Virus record (IMG/VR): IMGVR_UViG_3300036853_000446
Span: 248,001 to 312,000 of that record
Strand: one strand, 5' to 3'
DNA: 64,000 bases
The notes beneath the pieces were generated by a model. That model ran no database searches, was not told the origin of the DNA, and worked only from the letters and a program-made list of their open reading frames with translations. Positions 2,724 through 63,786 of the stretch are shown here, in pieces; position 1 is the first letter of the stretch, and each line of letters starts with the position of its first letter. Made by a program: the position numbers and the translations under genes.

Positions 2724-2980
2724 GTCGTGGTCTGGTGGGCTCCACGCAGCCTCTCAAATCTCTCTGCTCGCTGAGGAGGCAGCGCAACAGAACCAACGTC
2801 GTGGTCAGGTGGGCTCCACGCAGCCTCTCAAATGTCCGAGATCGCGACTTTAGGGTATGTAAATTCGTCGTGTCGTGGTCAGGTGGGCTCCACGCAGCCT
2901 CTCAAAGAAGGTGAACCCGTTGCTGTATGCCTTCGCGTCTACGAGTCGTGGTCAGGTGGGCTCCACGCAGCCTCTCAAAG
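2724..2980 (-). CRISPR. CRISPR array A1 (4 repeats, 3 spacers)
   Basis: 36-nt repeats GTCGTGGTCWGGTGGGCTCCACGCAGCCTCTCAAAK at 2724, 2798, 2872, 2945; spacers 37-38 nt; leader on the right. Confidence 0.95.
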
Positions 2981-3135
2981 ACGTAGCCTCAAAGTTCAGG
3001 CAATATAGGGCATTACGAGGCGGATTGCGAGAGGGTCGATCGTGCTCTGATTTGCCGTCGCGTAACCCTTCGATTTGCTTTGCATGGGCTGATCGAATCA
3101 CGTACTCGCTCGCCAAAGCCCCAAAGGGGCTCGGT
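2981..3135 (-). promoter_or_regulatory. conserved CRISPR leader copy 1
   Basis: Aligns with 12522-12665 and 18319-18472 (CAATATAGGGCATT, CGGATTGCGAG, GCGTAACCCTTCGATTTGCTTTGC, ATCGAATCAC, CGCTCGCC). Confidence 0.85.
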
Positions 3136-3184
3136 CGTCATTCGCAGGCGGACTCAGCGTGTGCTATGATTTATTAACTCAACC

Positions 3185-3745
3185 ATGGCCCAAACCGACA
3201 CCGTTGCCTCTCGGGTCGCCGCGCGTGTGCTCCACGCCATGGCCTATGATCGAAACGAATTCAGGAATAAGCTCGAAGAGCACATCGGTGGGGCTTACCT
3301 CGAGTTCTACAAGGCGCGGCTCGCAAGCAAGAACGGCCAAACCAAGTGGGTCAAGCACTGGCTCACGGAGGTGCGGCAGCTGCTCGATCGAAACCTCGTC
3401 GCCGCCATGCTGCACGAGATCCGCGGGTTCAAAGACCGGCGCAAGGTATATGAGCAGGTTTGTACCGCCATGAAGGCAAAGGACGCGGGCTACCGCCTGG
3501 CGGCTGAGAACACCGTGCTCCGTGACTACGGCCTTCGCAAGGTGCGCATGCTGCTAGACGATCAGGACACGACTAACTTTTGGGCCCTCGTCGAGCAGGC
3601 CGTCGACACCGGACTGGCAGGCAAGGCTGATGTCGAGCTGCAGGCACAACCCCAAGGCAAGCGCGATAAGGGCCGTGGCAAGCCGGAGAAGGGCGACAAC
3701 GGCCGTGGTAAGGGCGACAAGCGGAAGCGAGCGTCCGCTTCATGA
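3185..3745 (+). CDS. leader-adjacent hypothetical protein, paralog of 12708-13229
   Basis: Shared KLEEHIGGAYLEFYKARLA and EVRQLLDRNLV; basic C-terminal tail. Confidence 0.85.
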   Translation: MAQTDTVASRVAARVLHAMAYDRNEFRNKLEEHIGGAYLEFYKARLASKNGQTKWVKHWLTEVRQLLDRNLVAAMLHEIRGFKDRRKVYEQVCTAMKAKDAGYRLAAENTVLRDYGLRKVRMLLDDQDTTNFWALVEQAVDTGLAGKADVELQAQPQGKRDKGRGKPEKGDNGRGKGDKRKRASAS

Positions 3746-11730: not shown

Positions 11731-11773
11731 CCCGAGGGCCATTCGGGTGGGCTCCGATCGCTGGAATCGTCAG

Positions 11774-12521
11774 GTCGTGGTCTGGCCTCTTAACTCGAAA
11801 GACGAGCCGTCGTTGATGGGGACATGCGCTGAGTCGTGGTTGGGTGGGCTCCACGCAGCCTCTCAAATGGTATCGAGGAGGACGTCCTTCTCGCTGAACC
11901 GTCGTGGTCTGGTGGGCTCCACGTAGCCTCTCAAATCCACCAGGACGGACAAGCGTCCCGAGTAGTCGGCGTGTCGTGGTTGGGTGGGCTCCACGCAGCC
12001 TCTGAAATCGTCGGGCGAATCGTGTCTCATGCCGACAAGGTACTCGTCGTGGTCGGGTGGGCCCCACGCAGCCTCTCAAATCCGTTGAGAGAAGTAGTGA
12101 CCACTCGGTGTGGGATCTCGTCGTGGTCTGGTGGGCTCCACGCAGCCTCTCAAATTTTTCCTAAGGAGCGAGCCGGCGAACTATCCTCCCCGTCGTGGTC
12201 GGGTGGGCCCCACGCAGCCTCTCAAATCAAGATACCGCTGGTGCGAGACATTGGTGATACGTGGTCGTGGTTAGGTGGGCTCCACGCAGCTTCTCAAAAT
12301 CCATGACGGCGTCAGCGGTTGGTGAGGGTCATCCTCAAGTCGTGGTTGGGTGGGCTCCACGCAGCCTCTCAAATCAGCCGCTCAAATTACGCACCTCGCC
12401 ACGCTGGTTCCGTCGTGGTCAGGTGGGCTCCACGCAGCCTCTCAAATTCTTGTAATCGCCTGCGAGCCGTCCAGCCGCGGGTTGCGTCGTGGTCTGGTGG
12501 GCTCCACGCAGCCGCTCAAAT
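11774..12521 (-). CRISPR. CRISPR array A2 (10 repeats plus 1 internally deleted trailer repeat)
   Basis: Repeats at 11833, 11901, 11973, 12046, 12120, 12192, 12264, 12339, 12412, 12486; degenerate copy 11774-11794. Confidence 0.97.
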
Positions 12522-12665
12522 TTCGTAGCCTTAAAGTTCAGTCAATATAGGGCATTGCAACGCGGATTGCGAGGGGGTCGTTTATGAGCTGGTTTGCTCG
12601 CGCGTAACCCTTCGATTTGCTTTGCGTCGGTTGATCGAATCACCTTCCCGCTCGCCAAAGCCCCA
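12522..12665 (-). promoter_or_regulatory. conserved CRISPR leader copy 2
   Basis: Aligns with the other two leaders. Confidence 0.85.
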
Positions 12666-12707
12666 GAGTCGTCAGTCGCAGGTGTGCTACCCTTCGTTAA
12701 GGCCCCA

Positions 12708-13229
12708 ATGACCCAACCCGATACCGTTGTCGCTCGAGTGGCTGCGCGCGTGCTCCGCGCGATGGCTTATGACCGCAACGGCTTCAAGGACAAGCTCGAA
12801 GAACATATCGGCGGGGCCTATCTCGAGTTCTATAAGGCGCGGCTCGCGACCAAAAACAAGCAAACCGAGTGGGTTCAGCATTGGAACACGGAAGTGCGTC
12901 AGCTGCTCGACCGCAATTTGGTCGGTGCCATGCTGCACTCCATTCGTGGCTTTACGGACCGCCGAAAAGCATACGAGCAAGTTCGGACTATGCTTCGAGC
13001 AAGAGACGCCGGCTACCGGAGGGCGGCCGAAACCATCGTGCTCAAAGACTATGGCCTCCGGAAAGTCCGCATTCCTTTGGACGATCAGGATATGGAGGAT
13101 TTCTGGATCCTCGTTGACGAGGCCGCCGAGAACGGTCTAACGGCGGATCCTGATGCTGAAGTCAAGCCGCAAGGCAAGCGGCAAAAGGGAAAGCCCAACA
13201 AGCGGAAGCGAGCATTAGCCACGCCGTGA
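12708..13229 (+). CDS. leader-adjacent hypothetical protein, paralog of 3185-3745
   Basis: High visible identity to 3185-3745. Confidence 0.85.
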   Translation: MTQPDTVVARVAARVLRAMAYDRNGFKDKLEEHIGGAYLEFYKARLATKNKQTEWVQHWNTEVRQLLDRNLVGAMLHSIRGFTDRRKAYEQVRTMLRARDAGYRRAAETIVLKDYGLRKVRIPLDDQDMEDFWILVDEAAENGLTADPDAEVKPQGKRQKGKPNKRKRALATP

Positions 13230-13645: not shown

Positions 13646-14176
13646 ATGACGGATACCGAGTACGGCGCGCACACCAGGGCAAGATTGGCTGACATCGAGG
13701 CCCGCATCGAGGCTCTCGAGCTACGTGTCAGGGCCCAACCGCCCTCTCACGGCGCTCGCCAAAAGACCGCGACCTTTGACCCCGACGCTTGGCAAAAAAC
13801 CCTGCAGACCCCCGGGGGCGTCGCTGCGGTCGCTTCTGCCTTTGCGACGCACATCCGTGAGACCTTTGCTGCCCGCCGTCCTCGCGGTCTCGACCTCAAC
13901 GATTTGCACGAACGGACGAGCGTCACGAAGCTCGTCGAGGTTCTCGAGGCGTCCAGCGCTCGGCTTCGTGAATTCCAACCCGTCGGGGCGGCGGACGTCG
14001 ATCTCTCCCCGCTCGGCTCGCGCCCTTTTCGGACGGAATCCAAGGCGTCCACTTCCCGCTCCTGCTCGTTCTGCGGCAAGGCGCAGAACGAGGTGACCAA
14101 GCTCATCGCCGGTCCAACCGTTCTCATTTGCAATGAGTGCATCGACGTCTGCAACTCGATCGTCAGCGAGACGTGA
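13646..14176 (+). CDS. protein with C-terminal ClpX C4-type zinc finger
   Basis: [30 protein letters not shown]. Confidence 0.85.
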
Positions 14177-17550: not shown

Positions 17551-18318
17551 ATCGTGGTCTGGTAAGGCTCCATACAGCCTCGCGAATAAGTTCACAGCTT
17601 GAAAGGTCAAGGACAGATCGGGTTGTCGTGGTTGGGTGGGCTCCACGCAGCCTCTCAAATCGGTCGCCTTTGACACGGGCATACTCATATCATGCTGCCA
17701 GTCGTGGTTGGGTGGGCTCCACGCAGCCTCTCAAATCCGAGCACCACCGCGTCGCGACGCGGAAGGTAGTGGGGTCGTGGTTGGGTGGGCTCCACGCAGC
17801 CTCTCAAATCGCAAGCCAAGGATGCACGTGCTACGGACGACCGCGTGTCGTGGTTGGGTGGGCTCCACGCAGCCTCTCAAATCAAGCTGGCGGAAGCTGC
17901 CGTTGACCACTCTTCTATCGTCGTGGTCGGGTGGGCTCCACGCAGCCTCTCAAATCTGAACCTCGAGTGGATGCTTAATGGACCGCTCATCGTCGTGGTC
18001 GGGTGGGCTCCACGCAGCCTCTCAAATCCAATGCGCGACGAGGCTCGTCACCTGCGTCGGATTGTCGTGGTTGGGTGGGCTCCACGCAGCCTCTCAAATT
18101 CGCCTCGAAGCAGTCGGCACTCGTATCGGATGCGCACGTCGTGGTCGGGTGGGCTCCACGCAGCCTCTCAAATTCTGCGCCTGCAGGTGCGGGCTACCGA
18201 TCACAGTGGCGTCGTGGTCGGGTGGGCTCCACGCAGCCTCTCAAATCCGTCAAGTCCTCGGCCCCGAGACGGAGGTTGTGCTGTCGTGGTCGGGTGGGCT
18301 CCACGCAGCCTCTCAAAT
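17551..18318 (-). CRISPR. CRISPR array A3 (10 repeats plus 1 degenerate trailer repeat)
   Basis: Repeats at 17625, 17701, 17774, 17847, 17920, 17992, 18064, 18138, 18211, 18283; degenerate copy 17551-17587. Confidence 0.97.
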
Positions 18319-18472
18319 CTGTAGCCATAAAGTCCAGGCAATATAGGGCATTGCAAGGCGGATTGCGAGAGGGTCATTTACGAGCTGGTTTGTTCGCGCG
18401 TAACCCTTCGATTTGCTTTGCGTGAACTATCGAATCACCTTCGCGCTCGCCGAAGCCCAGAGGGGCTTCGGC
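18319..18472 (-). promoter_or_regulatory. conserved CRISPR leader copy 3 with distal hairpin
   Basis: Aligns with other leaders; perfect GCCGAAGCCC-AGAG-GGGCTTCGGC at 18449-18472. Confidence 0.85.
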
Positions 18473-18826
18473 CGTCCTGAGGTCCGATCACGACAACCCT
18501 ACCGTCTGTTTCGTCACGCCAACCAAGCCGAGAAGTCCGGCGAGACGGATCGCCTTGTAACAGCGTTCCTCGACCAATCCCGTCTCGCGGCCGAGCCTCG
18601 CGGCAAAAACATCGATGTCCACGATCCCGAGCCGGTTCGAGAGCTGAGCGACCAACAGAACCAATGAGACCGCGCTCCCGGGCATCTCGGTTCCGTGCAT
18701 CGTAAGCTCCGGAAACCATGGCACCGTGTGGAGAGGGCTCTCGGACATGGCCCAATCTTATCGTCTTTTTCCACGCGAGGGCGCATCAAAAGCGCGGTAA
18801 CCTCCACGCCCATGGGAGAAATAAAG

Positions 18827-42159: not shown

Positions 42160-43602
42160 ATGGCAAAGAGGAAGTCAAAGACGACGAGTGTCCAGCCCGG
42201 TGAAGTGCTGAAGGGGTTTCGCGTCAAACTCAGACCGACCCAGGAGGATCTGCGTTACCTATCGACGGCTCAAGTCGAGCTGATGACGATGTGGAACATC
42301 CTCGTGATAACGTGGAAGACGCACGTCGATTACTGCGTTCGGCATTGCGAGGACCTCGGGCTCATCGGACCCGTACCGCCACGACCGACCTCGGACCAAG
42401 ACACGAACGTGCCCGAAGAGATCGCCGAATGGGAGGAGTACGCGGCACTCTGCCGTGAACGCCGCCGAAGCGCTCGCGAGCAGTGTAAGACCGTCGAGGG
42501 TCTGACACGGCGCGACTGGGCGAATCGAGCCCTCGATTACCACCAACTTGATCTCACGGAGAAGGCTCGAGAGCAGACGCAGATCGATTACCGCGTCCTG
42601 CGGTCCGCCGTGAAGGGCGTCACGACGGCCCATATGGCCCAGGCCGTCATCGAGACTTACAAGGCGTCATTGCAGAAAGGGCGGCCGCCACCGAAGCTCA
42701 AGAGACGCCCGCTCGAGATGCCTCTCTTGCTTCGCAGCGGTAAGGATTTGCTTACGCTTTCAGCGAACCACTCCACCCGAACGACGGCGTCCGGGAAGAA
42801 GCGGCTCACCGGCTCCCACCACTGCATCGTCAAGTTTGGCCCGCTCAAGATCGGGGGACGATTCAACCGCCCGCCGTCGGGTCCCTTCCTCCAGGGCATT
42901 TCGATCGGGCTCGAGAAGGACGGCTGGTACGCCTCCGCGAAGGTCCGGACCCTACCTGAGGATCTGCCGAAGCCAACGAAGGAAATCATCGCGATCAACC
43001 CGGGACTCGAATGCCTCTACGCCGACAATGAGGGTTATGTGATCGAGAACCCACGGGGCAACGCTTACTCCCTCCGGATGCGCGAGATGAGCGATTGGAT
43101 CGACGACGCCGAAACCCAGTGGGACGAAGCCCACCGTCGCAACCATCAAGCTCGATATGCCGAGCGTTTCGCGCGGCACACGGAGGACCTCATCTACAGC
43201 CGCATCCTCCCGAAGCTCGCCGATTACGAGACGATTCTCATCGGCAAGGCCGGCAAAACCGCCGCTCAAGGTCGACAAAACCGCATCAGTAAGAACGACG
43301 AGGGCGGCTACGTTTCGGCCATGAGCTTGATGCAGCAGCTCATCATCCAGAGGTATGGCCTCTATGACCCCGACGAGAATCCGACGGGGCGAGTGCGAGT
43401 GCTGGAGTCCATGGGAATTTCCCGGAGGTGCTCGCGTTGCGGAACCGAGCACGCAACCCGTTATCAACGCAACAATTTACGCCGGTATGACCAACAGACC
43501 GATTGCCAGGAACCCTCGTGTCGGCTCAAGATACACGTCGATGTTGGCGCCGCTCGCAACCTGCTTTCCAACTATCGGGATTTGCAGGCGGCAGCAGAAT
43601 GA
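42160..43602 (+). CDS. compact type V (TnpB/Cas12-like) effector with inactivated RuvC, 480 aa
   Basis: TnpB-like GFRVKLRPT, PKLKRR, GWYAS; RuvC-I IIAINPG (D->N), RuvC-II TILIGK (E->G), Zn finger CSRC...CQEPSC, RuvC-III HVDVGAARNL; RBS GAGGGG; array 2 nt downstream. Confidence 0.88.
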   Translation: MAKRKSKTTSVQPGEVLKGFRVKLRPTQEDLRYLSTAQVELMTMWNILVITWKTHVDYCVRHCEDLGLIGPVPPRPTSDQDTNVPEEIAEWEEYAALCRERRRSAREQCKTVEGLTRRDWANRALDYHQLDLTEKAREQTQIDYRVLRSAVKGVTTAHMAQAVIETYKASLQKGRPPPKLKRRPLEMPLLLRSGKDLLTLSANHSTRTTASGKKRLTGSHHCIVKFGPLKIGGRFNRPPSGPFLQGISIGLEKDGWYASAKVRTLPEDLPKPTKEIIAINPGLECLYADNEGYVIENPRGNAYSLRMREMSDWIDDAETQWDEAHRRNHQARYAERFARHTEDLIYSRILPKLADYETILIGKAGKTAAQGRQNRISKNDEGGYVSAMSLMQQLIIQRYGLYDPDENPTGRVRVLESMGISRRCSRCGTEHATRYQRNNLRRYDQQTDCQEPSCRLKIHVDVGAARNLLSNYRDLQAAAE

Positions 43603-43604
43603 CC

Positions 43605-44869
43605 CTCAGAACGGCAGCGTGGTGCCTACCCTCCCACGACGAGGAGTTCGGTGGCCGCGCGCGATGATGTGCAAGACCTCAGAACGGCAGCGTGGTGCCT
43701 ACCCTCCCACGACACGAGGTCGGAAAGAGTCTCAATCTCGGCAATCTCACGCTCAGAACGGCAGCGTGGTGCCTACCCTCCCACGACGACCTGCGGAAGA
43801 AGGGCCTTCGCCGATCTACTTGGGCTCAGAACGGCAGCGTGGTGCCTACCCTCCCACGACGAAGTGACGTCTACCAATTGGGCTTGGTCCTCTATCACTC
43901 AGAACGGCAGCGTGGTGCCTACCCTCCCACGACTTATGGGGATGAACCGAGAACCAGCCTCGATCGATGTCTCAGAACGGCAGCGTGGTGCCTACCCTTC
44001 CACGATAGCCGCGTCCTCCAAACTGCCGAATCGATTCCGAAACTCAGAACGGCAGCGTGGTGCCTACCCTCCCACGACGGCATCTCCACTCGTTCCCTCG
44101 TCCTCCGGGTATGGACCTCAGAACGGCAGCGTGGTGCCTACCCTCCCACGACTACGGCTGGCGGTCCCCCGCCAAACGAGGTTGGCGTGCTCAGAACGGC
44201 AGCGTGGTGCCTACCCTCCCACGACGAAACATCACGCGCCTGGGCAACAGCATCAGCGTCGCCATCTCAGAACGGCAGCGTGGTGCCTACCCTCCCACGA
44301 CCAACGACATGACCCCGTGGAACCTGTGAGCTTGCTCGGCGCTCCTCGGAACGGCAGCGTGGTGCCTACCCTCCCACGACGGAAAGACTCGTTCGTGATC
44401 CCGAGTCGACCCCCATGCTCAGAACGGCAGCGTGGTGCCTACCCTTCCACGACGAGGAGTTCGGTGGCCGCGATGGTGATGCGCAAGCCCTCAGCATGGC
44501 AGCGTGGTGCCTACCCCTCCACGACTTCGAGCAACACGTCAACGCGCGTATTGGCTCGTTCAGCCTCAGAGTGGCAGCGCGGTGCCTACCCTTCCGCGAC
44601 ACGTCCCCCAGTTAGCGGAAAGCCTCGGTACTGGTCTCAGAATGGCAGCGTGGTGCCTACCCTTCCACGACCACATCCGTGGATAGAGAGTCCCCCTCCG
44701 GAGTCAACCTCAGAACGGCAGCGTGGTGCCTACCCTTCCACGACTTTCCGATCTCGTTAAAGTAGATGCGGACTTATGGCAGCGTGGTGCCTACCCTTCC
44801 ACGACGTGCACGGGTCTTCTCAAAGAAAGACGCCTCAGAACGGCAGCGTGGTGCCTACCATTCCACGAC
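43605..44869 (+). CRISPR. CRISPR array B (18 repeats, 17 spacers)
   Basis: 36-nt CTCAGAACGGCAGCGTGGTGCCTACCCTYCCACGAC at 43605, 43678, 43752, 43825, 43898, 43971, 44043, 44117, 44190, 44266, 44345, 44418, 44490, 44565, 44636, 44709, ~44770 (5'-degenerate), 44834; decay increases away from the gene. Confidence 0.98.
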
Positions 44870-45975: not shown

Positions 45976-46160
45976 GGTTGAGAGGCTGCGTGGAGCCCAC
46001 CCAACTACGACGGTATCATTCGGCTTTTTATCAGGTCCCCCGATCCGGAGTAACTTGCGAGGCTGCGTGGAGCCCACCCAACTACGATATGCCCGTGCCG
46101 ACGTGGCGCTTCCAAGAAAGGTACATTTGAGAGGCTGCGTGGAGCCCATCACACCACGAC
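45976..46160 (+). CRISPR. CRISPR mini-array A4 (3 family-A repeats)
   Basis: Repeats at 45976, 46053, 46125 in the ATTTGAGAGG...CCACGAC orientation. Confidence 0.9.
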
Positions 46161-46250
46161 TTGCTTGGATCGTTGACTTGATAGGTTTTCAACCCTGATG
46201 ACAGGCTTGCACCGATGAACCCGGTTGGCTCGACCCCAAACCCGGGTAAC

Positions 46251-46286
46251 GATGAAATGGCAGCGTGGTGCCTACCCTTCCACGAC
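46251..46286 (+). repeat. orphan family-B CRISPR repeat
   Basis: GATGAAATGGCAGCGTGGTGCCTACCCTTCCACGAC, 3' 28 nt match repeat B. Confidence 0.85.
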
Positions 46287-58681: not shown

Positions 58682-58846
58682 ATGGCAGCACGTCGGACCC
58701 GTTCACCATCACAAGCGCCATCAGAGCCGAATGCCGAGACGGTGCGCGTAACCTGTTACCAGGTCGACGTTTCGCGGGAACAGCAACAAGCCATTCATCA
58801 GCAGCTTCTCGAATTACTCGCTGAAATTTATCGGAACCTTAAATGA
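58682..58846 (+). CDS. 54-aa protein coupled to the recombinase
   Basis: MAARRTRS...QLLELLAEIYRNLK; ATGA overlap with 58843; not in ORF track. Confidence 0.55.
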   Translation: MAARRTRSPSQAPSEPNAETVRVTCYQVDVSREQQQAIHQQLLELLAEIYRNLK

Positions 58847-60420
58847 AGGCTGCAATCTACGCCCGTGTGTCGTCCGACCAGCAAAGGGAGCGCCACACCA
58901 TCGGCTCGCAGCTCACCGAGCTACCCAAGTACGCAAAAAGCCAAGGCTGGACGGTTGTCCGACTCTACCAAGACGACGGCAAGTCGGGAGAGAGTATCGA
59001 CGGGCGTCCAGAGTTTCAGGCACTTCTCGAGGACGCCGAGAAGAAACTCTTTGAAATTGTCCTCGTCATCGACCTCGACCGCATCACTCGCTCGAAACGT
59101 GATCAGGAGGGGGCTTTCATCTACGACACGTTTCGGTTGCATGGCATCAAGCTGGCGACTCCGAGCAACGGTCTCATCGATCTCGAGAATGAGGACCAGG
59201 ACCTTCAGATCGGTATCCTTCAGGCTTTCGCAAAGTTTGAGAAGCGGAAATTTCTCCGCCGAACGATGCGAGGTAAGTATCAGGCCGCTAAAGACGGGAA
59301 GCGGTATGGTTCGATCGATCCCTACGGGTATCGGTGGGTTATCGACCCGGTCTTGAAGGCGGGGGGCTCGTACCAGATCGTCGAGGACGAAGCTAAAGTC
59401 GTTCGTCGCATCTACAGCCTCGCTCTCGAAGGTCATGGCGTGGCAATGATCGCTTGGATGTTAGAGAATGAGGGTATTCGGACGCGACCACGCGCACCCC
59501 GTGGCACCGAAGGCAAGATCGCCGGTCCTTGGTGGCGCTCGTCTGTGCTGAAGGTTCTGCATTCCGTGACGTACACGGGATCGTTCAAAGTCCTCAAGGG
59601 GAAGGAGAGCGAACCCCTCTCGATCAAGGTCCCGCCTATTGTCACCCGGGCAACCTGGGACGCAGCCCAGAGGGCGCTCACACAGCGCAAGATGTCCTCG
59701 GGCGCTCCGGCACGACACGACCACCTCTTACGCGGATGCGCCTCGTGCGGCGTCTGCGGGTACAAGATGTGGATCGTTACCCCTAGGGCCGGCAAAAGCG
59801 CTGCCTACTACAGATGCTGCACGACCAACGGATGGCGCGGCATGGGCCTCAAGGGCCCATGTGGCAACAAGCACCACCGAGTGGACCGCACGGACCATGA
59901 GGTCCAGACGAAGGTGCTCGAGATTCTGCAAAATCCAAAGCTGCTAGCTCAAGCGTGTTCGTTGCAGGGTGAACCTACGGACGGGGTCGACTGGAAAGGT
60001 CAGCTCCGAGGTCTCGAGCAAAAGCTTGCGATACTGGATGAGGCCGCGTCCGACGCGATGGTCCGTCAGCGTCGGGGAATCATTCCTTCCGCGGTCGCCG
60101 AGAAGGAACTCCTGAACATTGCCCGCGAGCGAAAGCTCGTTGACCGAAACGTCAAACTAGCGCGTGTCAGATCCGGTAAAGCCTCAGCTGAACGCAGCCT
60201 GCGCCAAAATATCGAGGATCAAGCAAAGGCCCTAAGCAGCGGACTCGATCAAGCGGACTTTGAAACGCGACGGAAGATTATCACCCTGCTCCTTCCGAGA
60301 GAGCTGGGCTGCGGTGTCGTCCTGCACCGGGACGGTGGTATCGACATCAAATGGGTCCTGCCACTGCCCGGCGACATCGAGCACGTGGAACTACGCACCG
60401 CCCTCAAAAAAGTTGGGTGA
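58843..60420 (+). CDS. large serine recombinase (integrase)
   Basis: AAIYARVSS, DDGKSG, RPEFQALL, DLDRITR, PYGY recombinase domain, CGVC...YYRC...C Zn ribbon, coiled coil. Confidence 0.95.
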   Translation: MKAAIYARVSSDQQRERHTIGSQLTELPKYAKSQGWTVVRLYQDDGKSGESIDGRPEFQALLEDAEKKLFEIVLVIDLDRITRSKRDQEGAFIYDTFRLHGIKLATPSNGLIDLENEDQDLQIGILQAFAKFEKRKFLRRTMRGKYQAAKDGKRYGSIDPYGYRWVIDPVLKAGGSYQIVEDEAKVVRRIYSLALEGHGVAMIAWMLENEGIRTRPRAPRGTEGKIAGPWWRSSVLKVLHSVTYTGSFKVLKGKESEPLSIKVPPIVTRATWDAAQRALTQRKMSSGAPARHDHLLRGCASCGVCGYKMWIVTPRAGKSAAYYRCCTTNGWRGMGLKGPCGNKHHRVDRTDHEVQTKVLEILQNPKLLAQACSLQGEPTDGVDWKGQLRGLEQKLAILDEAASDAMVRQRRGIIPSAVAEKELLNIARERKLVDRNVKLARVRSGKASAERSLRQNIEDQAKALSSGLDQADFETRRKIITLLLPRELGCGVVLHRDGGIDIKWVLPLPGDIEHVELRTALKKVG

Positions 60421-63636: not shown

Positions 63637-63786
63637 ATTTCAGAGGCTGCGTGGAGCCCGCCCAACCACGACTCATTCAATCGGCAGAACTTGGTTCAAA
63701 TATGAAGGGCTGCGTGGAGCCCACCCAACCACGACAAGATTCACGACACGCTGTGAGAGGCCGCGTGGAGCCCACCCAACCACGAC
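63637..63786 (+). CRISPR. CRISPR mini-array A5 (3 family-A repeats, short spacers)
   Basis: Repeats at 63637, 63700, ~63751; spacers 27 and 15-18 nt; AT-rich upstream with TACAAT at 63604-63609. Confidence 0.9.

Follow-up and report, generated by a model that had tools for sequence, protein, structure and literature searches.

To our knowledge, hardly any leaders of phage-borne type V CRISPR arrays have been described. In the IHF-dependent type I-E and I-F systems, the leader combines an IHF site with an upstream Cas1 recognition motif. CRISPR systems that lack adaptation genes are found in huge phages, and they include a "dCas14" that has been proposed to repress (Al-Shayeb et al. 2020, PMC7162821). 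Dead Cas12f proteins near CRISPR arrays form another set; these are C-terminally truncated and bacterial, and their sigmaE-linked members come from Bacteroidetes (PMC13472631). A further study presents virus-borne mini-CRISPR arrays as being used in inter-virus conflicts (Medvedeva et al. 2019, PMC6858448).

The DNA analyzed here (64,000 nucleotides; hereafter, the window) corresponds to bases 248,001 to 312,000 of a 407,634-bp record (60.5% G+C; CheckV completeness, 86%), which belongs to a huge phage recovered from a soil metagenome. Although labelled linear, the record may represent a whole genome that is circular or terminally redundant; bases 1 to 126 are repeated exactly at 407,496 to 407,621, with 13 extra nucleotides at the far end. 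Its 30 tRNA genes lie in one cluster (genome positions 140,248 to 164,650), all on one strand.

With the huge phages of PMC7162821 this phage shares a genome of >200 kb, a compact effector of the Cas14/V-U kind that is without some catalytic residues, several arrays, and the absence of Cas1, Cas2, and Cas4; it differs in that its arrays are more numerous and longer, and leaders go undescribed in that paper. The likeness to the dead Cas12f and dCas12f-sigmaE proteins of PMC13472631 extends to a Cas12f-like fold, a broken RuvC, association with arrays, no tracrRNA having been found, and proposed guide-related elements upstream of arrays. However, the present effector retains its zinc ribbon and RuvC-III, has suffered point losses in RuvC-I and RuvC-II, is phage borne, and has no adjacent sigma factor; dCas12f structures rank 31st and 36th in its fold search. 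The phage also resembles the viruses treated in the mini-array study in bearing stand-alone arrays with leaders of their own on a viral genome and in having one spacer with a regulatory motif typical of related phages. Such mini-arrays reportedly copy the repeat and leader of the host and rely on host Cas proteins. In contrast, the present phage encodes an effector itself, and the species genomes searched (see below) revealed no host array that has its repeat. The present system joins the described compact type V systems of huge phages, and its distinctive trait is a box that is common to its leaders and the 3' end of its effector gene.

The conserved element and its arrays

A fuzzy search recovered five arrays of one 36-nt repeat in the window (A1 to A5), and an array of a variant repeat (A0) follows the effector gene, for a phage total of 6 arrays and about 48 repeats. 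A conserved element of about 150 bp (n = 3) abuts the last plus-strand repeat of A1, A2, and A3. These features are as follows.

2724-2980, minus strand: array A1, 4 repeats and 3 spacers, with a decayed repeat remnant and a 15-nt pseudo-spacer at 2694-2723
2981-3139, minus strand: candidate leader copy 1, abutting the first repeat of A1 on what is, as transcribed, its upstream side
11740-12521, minus strand: array A2, 10 repeats (11833-12521) and two decayed ones at the distal end (about 11740-11795)
12522-12668, minus strand: candidate leader copy 2, upstream of A2; an 8-nt deletion removed the distal hairpin
17551-18318, minus strand: array A3, 10 repeats (17625-18318) and one decayed repeat at 17551-17586
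18319-18476, minus strand: candidate leader copy 3, upstream of A3; three-way similarity stops past the distal hairpin
42160-43602, plus strand: effector gene, about 480 aa, TnpB/Cas12f fold, likely start ATG at 42160
43605-44869, plus strand: array A0, in which a variant 36-nt repeat occurs 18 times, beginning 2 nt past the effector stop; distal repeats decayed
45976-46286, plus strand: array A4, 3 A1-type decayed repeats and one of the A0 type
63637-63786, plus strand: array A5, 3 decayed repeats with spacers of 27 nt and 15 nt

We read the three copies as leaders, each belonging to one of three dispersed arrays in the service of a compact type V system that the phage encodes, and we put the probability of this reading at roughly 0.55. 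Within it, the element is most likely promoter bearing, to judge from the motifs considered below.

The preliminary description of the window had reported three aligned copies starting at 2981, 12522, and 18319; a repeat finder (limits, 2982-3126, 12524-12668, and 18320-18464), a MAFFT alignment, and BLASTN all agree with it. In the alignment, 113 of 160 columns are invariant across the three copies, pairwise identities range from 0.79 to 0.86, and the G+C content of the leaders is 53 to 55% versus 60.5% for the genome. BLASTN searches with each copy against the whole 407,634-bp contig detected no fourth copy above noise, and an nhmmer profile search agreed. The two decayed arrays, A4 and A5, are likewise without a copy according to BLASTN, and they may be relics or regulatory mini-arrays. 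A 20-mer from the leader was absent from JGI metagenome contigs, and IMG/VR yielded no relatives by leader, repeat, or protein.

Copies 1 and 2 run on into a duplicated gene (3185-3745 and 12708-13229). Between these two copies, the leader has an identity of 0.84, and the corresponding values in the adjacent gene are 0.89 for first, 0.88 for second, and 0.56 for third codon positions. Substitutions within the leader are clustered, with a 25-nt run that is invariant in all three copies (equalled in 64 of 20,000 permutations) lying beside some 20 nt in which the copies differ for the most part. A small open reading frame in the leader was considered and rejected, its frame not being common to the three copies (the ATG is present in copy 1 only, and copy 3 has a 1-nt deletion). 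The clustered substitutions, the leader identity above that of third codon positions, and the lack of a common frame together indicate that the element is functional non-coding DNA. Its identity exceeds that expected from common ancestry alone and reflects purifying constraint, although gene conversion spreading from the arrays could contribute to the high identity of the copies.

The repeat provides a guide to the direction in which the arrays are read. In the transcript direction it comprises 8 nt, a 4-nt arm of stem 1, 6 nt with a 5-nt arm of stem 2, the other stem 1 arm, 7 nt, the second stem 2 arm, and a terminal AC, and overall it constitutes an H-type pseudoknot. Both stems show covariation between lineages, stem 1 in four variants (GGCU/AGCC, GGCA/UGCC, GCCC/GGGC, and GGCC/GGCC) and stem 2 in five (CGUGG/CCACG, UGCAG/CUGCA, UGCGG/CCGCA, CACGA/UCGUG, and CGCGG/CCGCG), and this extends to differences within A0, where the repeat at 44565-44600 has CGCGG/CCGCG. 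The pseudoknot was seen in all of the phage arrays and in those of eight related loci (L003, L004, L008, L009, L011, L013, L014, and L015), and three wobble variants pair as G·U on the transcript strand only. In seven related loci (L003, L004, L005, L009, L011, L014, and L015), as in A0, the array begins within a few nucleotides of the effector stop on the same strand; it follows within about 40 nt downstream of the stop in L013, and in L006, L008, and L012 a non-coding stretch of 255 to 260 bp separates the effector gene from an array on the same strand. These stop-adjacent arrays of homologous loci and the pairs that form as G·U on one strand only indicate that A1 to A3 are read on the minus strand and that the element upstream of them is their leader.

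The position proposed for the leader earlier, upstream on the minus strand at the intact-repeat end and opposite the decayed repeats, is borne out. The degenerate repeats seen at the opposite ends of A2 and A3 were found again, with a further remnant at A1; in A0, A1, A2, A3, and the array of L008, repeat decay is confined to the far end, and the leaders of A1 to A3 adjoin the end with intact repeats. The element thus agrees with CRISPR leaders in general in abutting the first repeat, in being kept among arrays of one repeat, in its low G+C content, in its promoter-like pair of motifs, and in its location at the intact-repeat end. It differs from them in that the genome has no adaptation module, the arrays lie 25 to 40 kb from the effector, and one box matches the effector's own 3'-end codons.

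Spacers are diverse and unique, and their length is nearly constant, at 32 to 40 nt and mostly 36 to 38 nt (mostly 36 to 40 nt in the preliminary description). Spacers that are diverse, unique, and of near-constant length imply that some adaptation machinery acted at some time. Searches for their targets found no full-length self-target and no match in 50,697 public phage records. Of sequencing runs, DNA and RNA alike, only one, a DNA run, was found to contain the phage; its Logan contigs (6,000 bases compared) are interrupted where the arrays lie, and no variants were seen in them.

Several spacers and repeats have peculiarities of their own. Spacer 2 of A1 (2834-2871) has a palindromic motif, CGACCCTAAAGTCG, which also occurs between genes in the present phage (14226; genome positions 323,106 to 323,120), as an 18-nt internal match without the 5' seed, and between genes in a related phage contig (L018, about 925-940); this spacer may have been derived from the regulatory region of a competing relative. 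Spacers 1 and 12 of A0 have 19 identical nucleotides in common. One and the same 15-nt pseudo-spacer, with decayed repeats on either side, is found at the distal end of A1 (2709-2723) and inside A5 (63736-63750). Spacer 2 of A2 (12375-12411) ends in a 13-nt copy of the 5' end of the repeat, in the variant of the first repeat of A2, which looks like a slipped or partial repeat duplication. Array A0 also accounts for a spurious 369-aa open reading frame at 43651-44760. On the L008 contig, a second, unrelated array with a 37-nt repeat lies upstream of the effector (1-339), so that two CRISPR repeat types occur on one contig.

The effector and the candidate promoter

The only TnpB/Cas12-type zinc ribbon in the genome is in the open reading frame that ends at 43602, where the match to PF07282 is weak; other sequence models gave similarly weak TnpB, Cas12f, or Cas12u matches. 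Its predicted structure has a mean pLDDT of 76. The best Foldseek matches are ISFba1 TnpB, AsCas12f, and CnCas12f (1e-12 to 1e-10), and a wider set that takes in Cas12p and Cas12m spans E values of 1e-12 to 1e-9. The TnpB/Cas12f fold, the C-terminal zinc ribbon, and the adjoining co-directional array (A0) agree with the arrangement of type V-F/V-U systems.

We found 13 close relatives of the effector (52 to 74% identity) in soil-type metagenomes, and aligned twelve family members, including the protein of the window. In all 12, the RuvC-I motif is AINPG or AINAG, so that Asn occupies the position of the catalytic Asp, and the RuvC-II Glu is gone, leaving the RuvC-III Asp as the sole invariant catalytic residue; an intact RuvC Asp-Glu-Asp triad was not found in the family alignment. 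A distant relative (P0015; 26% identical) has kept GIDVG and VVEDL. On this sequence evidence, the effector family is probably nuclease dead, and the loss of two RuvC catalytic residues suggests that the effector probably binds and silences its targets rather than cutting them. It is another candidate for a natural DNA-binding-only mini-Cas, with six arrays in a 407-kb soil phage. In the proposed mechanism, crRNAs consisting of the 36-nt pseudoknot repeat followed by a spacer would load this effector of about 480 aa, encoded 25 to 40 kb away from the arrays whose leaders are considered here.

In copy 1, the leader contains the following motifs, listed outward from the first repeat.

3002-3007, minus strand: TATATT, candidate -10 element, 17 nt past TCGCAA; the pair, spacing included, is invariant in the three copies
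3025-3031, minus strand: CTCGCAA box, whose TCGCAA is a candidate -35 element, 51 nt ahead of the first repeat
3059-3083, minus strand: invariant 25-nt block, holding an IHF-like 13-mer and the ATCGAA arm of a 6-bp inverted repeat (partner arm, TTCGAT at 3092-3097)
3105-3113, minus strand: GCGAG motif(s) on the distal side, in inverted orientation to the CTCGC box
3117-3131, no strand assigned: distal hairpin with a 6-bp stem and an AAA loop, present in a 9-bp version in copy 3 and absent from copy 2

The 13-mer, the CTCGCAA box, and the GCGAG motifs had been noticed before, and each was found again; the distal hairpin, which had been attributed to the leader as a whole, is present in copies 1 and 3 and deleted from copy 2.

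With TATATT ending 21 nt short of the first repeat, transcription is predicted to start near 2995, about 15 nt before that repeat. In 407 kb, the pattern TCGCA-N18-TATNNT has only four occurrences: each leader has one, and the fourth is at the promoter predicted for the divergent gene at 3185. The -35 hexamer agrees with the consensus at 3 of 6 positions, and the consensus may not be that of the phage or its host; this low agreement is why a promoter scan did not call the leader promoter. The genes that neighbor copies 1 and 2 diverge from the arrays, so that no upstream gene can drive A1 and A2, which need a promoter of their own. We suggest that the repeat-proximal third of the leader would act as the array's own promoter (TCGCAA, 17 nt, and TATATT), that the distal blocks (the 25-nt block, the TTCGAT/ATCGAA inverted repeat, and GCGAG) are putative binding sites for regulatory proteins, and that the distal hairpin may insulate the leader-array unit from the divergent neighbor gene. 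The idea that TCGCA-N18-TATNNT represents a general promoter class of the phage was discarded, there being only those four sites.

The CTCGCAA box at related loci

Three independent lineages of non-coding leaders are available for comparison, namely, those of the present phage, L008, and L012. In a pool of these leaders, CTCGC/GCGAG is the top enriched pentamer (12 seen versus 2.9 expected), and inverted copies occur in each of them, so that the pair of motifs singled out in the earlier account is not random. The position of CTCGC relative to the first repeat is -51 or -52 in the three copies, -51 in L008, and -49 in L012. More generally, a CTCGCAA box lies about 49 to 57 nt (mostly 51 to 52 nt) before the first repeat in all of the related arrays examined. 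In seven aligned gene-adjacent arrays (A0, L003, L004, L009, L011, L014, and L015), it occupies an equal place within a few nucleotides, and there it consists of effector codons, those for Ala-Ala-Arg-Asn of RuvC-III. At the position of the -10 element, the coding versions have xGGATT, and two of the non-coding lineages have TATATT or TATTTT; the third, L012, has no good -10 at the corresponding position. This pattern would fit a promoter that improved after the coding constraint was lifted, although L012 does not agree with it.

The CTCGCAA box was probably inherited from the 3' end of the effector gene, which abuts the first repeat in the ancestral layout. The box aside, no alignment was obtained among the leader of the present phage, the effector 3' end, and the leaders of L006, L008, and L012 by local alignment, register-anchored identity, MAFFT, or nhmmer. 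Because the lineages align at the box only, the case for descent from the gene end is built on one motif of 11 to 13 nt and its position. Synonymous conservation at the effector 3' end shows a mild excess (0.60 versus 0.51 overall), with other windows reaching 0.66. Coding in some lineages but not in others, and at a nearly constant distance from the first repeat, the box offers a concrete, testable trace of the way in which a free-standing leader could emerge from a TnpB-like 3' end.

The 255- to 260-bp leaders of L008 (3130-3200) and L012 (8300-8350) also have GTTCTTTGRCAATYGAA in common, as well as a hairpin with one compensatory change (GCAC/GUGC versus GCGC/GCGC); both are absent from the leader of the present phage.

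Alternative readings of the element

The preliminary description took the element for an integration leader of the kind known from type I systems, at which Cas1-Cas2 would be borrowed in trans. On this account, IHF would bend the leader at AATCGAAGGGTTA, the GCGAG/CTCGC motifs would dock the Cas1-Cas2 of the host, and new spacers would enter adjacent to them; a promoter role could coexist with all of this. We consider it unlikely, though several observations are as it would predict. Repeat decay in the arrays is polar and directed away from the leader, the spacers have the diversity, uniqueness, and near-constant length noted above, and CTCGC/GCGAG is not only enriched but, in each of the three independent non-coding lineages, has one copy whose distance from the first repeat is nearly fixed. 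The local absence of adaptation genes reported earlier extends to the whole 407-kb phage, in which we found no Cas1, Cas2, or Cas4 (the best Cas1 match, with E = 0.013, is below the cut-off) and no IHF/HU gene, and the use of host Cas proteins has been proposed for some huge phages (Al-Shayeb 2020, PMC7162821).

Nevertheless, the IHF-like site is at chance frequency, with 14 matches (≤1 mismatch) in the window versus 13.4 expected, and its mismatch is in the core of the consensus. The three leader matches, on the minus strand at 3063-3075, 12605-12617, and 18401-18413, amount to one inherited site, and no true IHF site (WATCAANNNNTTR) was found at a set distance from the first repeat, the match being a one-mismatch match only. 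With the IHF-dependent type I-E and I-F leaders the element does share a motif about 50 nt upstream of the first repeat and this one-mismatch 13-mer; it differs from them in that the site is at chance level, type I genes, Cas1-Cas2, and IHF are missing, and both repeat and effector are type V-like. The effector and the main array A0, which were not listed in the earlier account, show a compact type V (TnpB/Cas12f-like) system rather than type I. Borrowing of Cas1-Cas2 in trans likewise finds no counterpart in the data. A search of 185,579 GTDB species genomes with a pattern that covered all of the repeat variants revealed no host array with this repeat, only two chance single matches, and the host itself may be absent from that set; neither Cas1 nor Cas2 lies near any of the related loci examined. 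Moreover, two near-identical loci from different samples (L004 and L005) have identical leader-proximal spacers, and in the gene-adjacent arrays the docking box would be coding sequence. The leader is under selection even though the phage is without adaptation genes, and this combination points to a constrained function in the control of expression, not in the uptake of spacers.

A second alternative is that the element encodes a discrete RNA, either a scaffold resembling a tracrRNA or omega-RNA or a long guide (leader plus first repeat and spacer), which the effector needs. Effectors as small as the members of this family (435 to 480 aa, with a Cas12f/TnpB fold) normally depend on a long scaffold RNA. 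The box corresponds to the effector 3'-end codons, where TnpB omega-RNAs begin, and a 14-nt partial repeat lies directly before the first repeat. Further, putative guide RNAs have been reported from intergenic stretches that lie upstream of arrays beside dead Cas12f (PMC13472631). The need for a scaffold, the position of the box, and the reported guide RNAs are why we keep this reading at all, as a distinctly doubtful one. Against it, searches of the element and of the whole phage genome detected no anti-repeat: neither the local alignments nor the duplex energies surpassed those of shuffled sequences, and leader-repeat alignments yielded no anti-repeat common to the three copies. The folding energies of the leader, compared with those of shuffled sequences on both strands, gave z values from -0.9 to +0.2; RNAalifold, also on both strands, gave no compensatory pairs among the three copies; and Rfam produced no match at the gathering thresholds or at E = 1. 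The repeat, for its part, is a self-contained pseudoknot. A pairing between CCUCUC of the leader and GAGAGG of the repeat exists in the present phage and was dropped from consideration because it is not kept in other lineages.

A related and comparably doubtful proposal joins such an RNA to the history of the box. The leader would be a non-coding descendant of the effector 3' end that still functions as RNA, combining with the first repeat into a long omega-RNA-like guide, or into a platform for loading and processing, for a nuclease-dead effector. If this is true, the phage would preserve a living intermediate between the TnpB omega-RNA that overlaps the 3' end of its gene and a CRISPR array with a free-standing leader, and about 40 guides would be used for programmable silencing, not cleavage.

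The least probable alternative, that the element has no array role and either belongs to the divergent plus-strand neighbor gene (as an operator or as its 5' region) or was carried along in a segmental duplication and kept similar by gene conversion, can draw on the continuation of copies 1 and 2 into a homologous gene and on the resemblance of the inverted repeats and invariant block to operator sites, but copy 3 has the element without that gene, the homologues of the gene in L018 to L020 have neither such an element nor an adjoining array, the predicted promoter of the gene is outside the conserved block, and the element always accompanies an array.

Returning to the surroundings of the three arrays and the leaders we assign to them, the window contains other features of the phage. 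A motif ending in GCCCGTACTCCC, with CGGATCA about 20 nt upstream, has 53 copies in the genome (up to 2 mismatches), including sites at 782, 5911, 14505, 16034, 19954, and 20245 of the window. The inspected copies directly precede start codons, and the motif may be a phage-specific promoter or translation signal. Between A2 and A3, a small protein with a ClpX-type C4 zinc finger is encoded at 13646-14176, and a large serine recombinase with Resolvase, Recombinase, and zinc-ribbon domains is encoded at 58843-60420.
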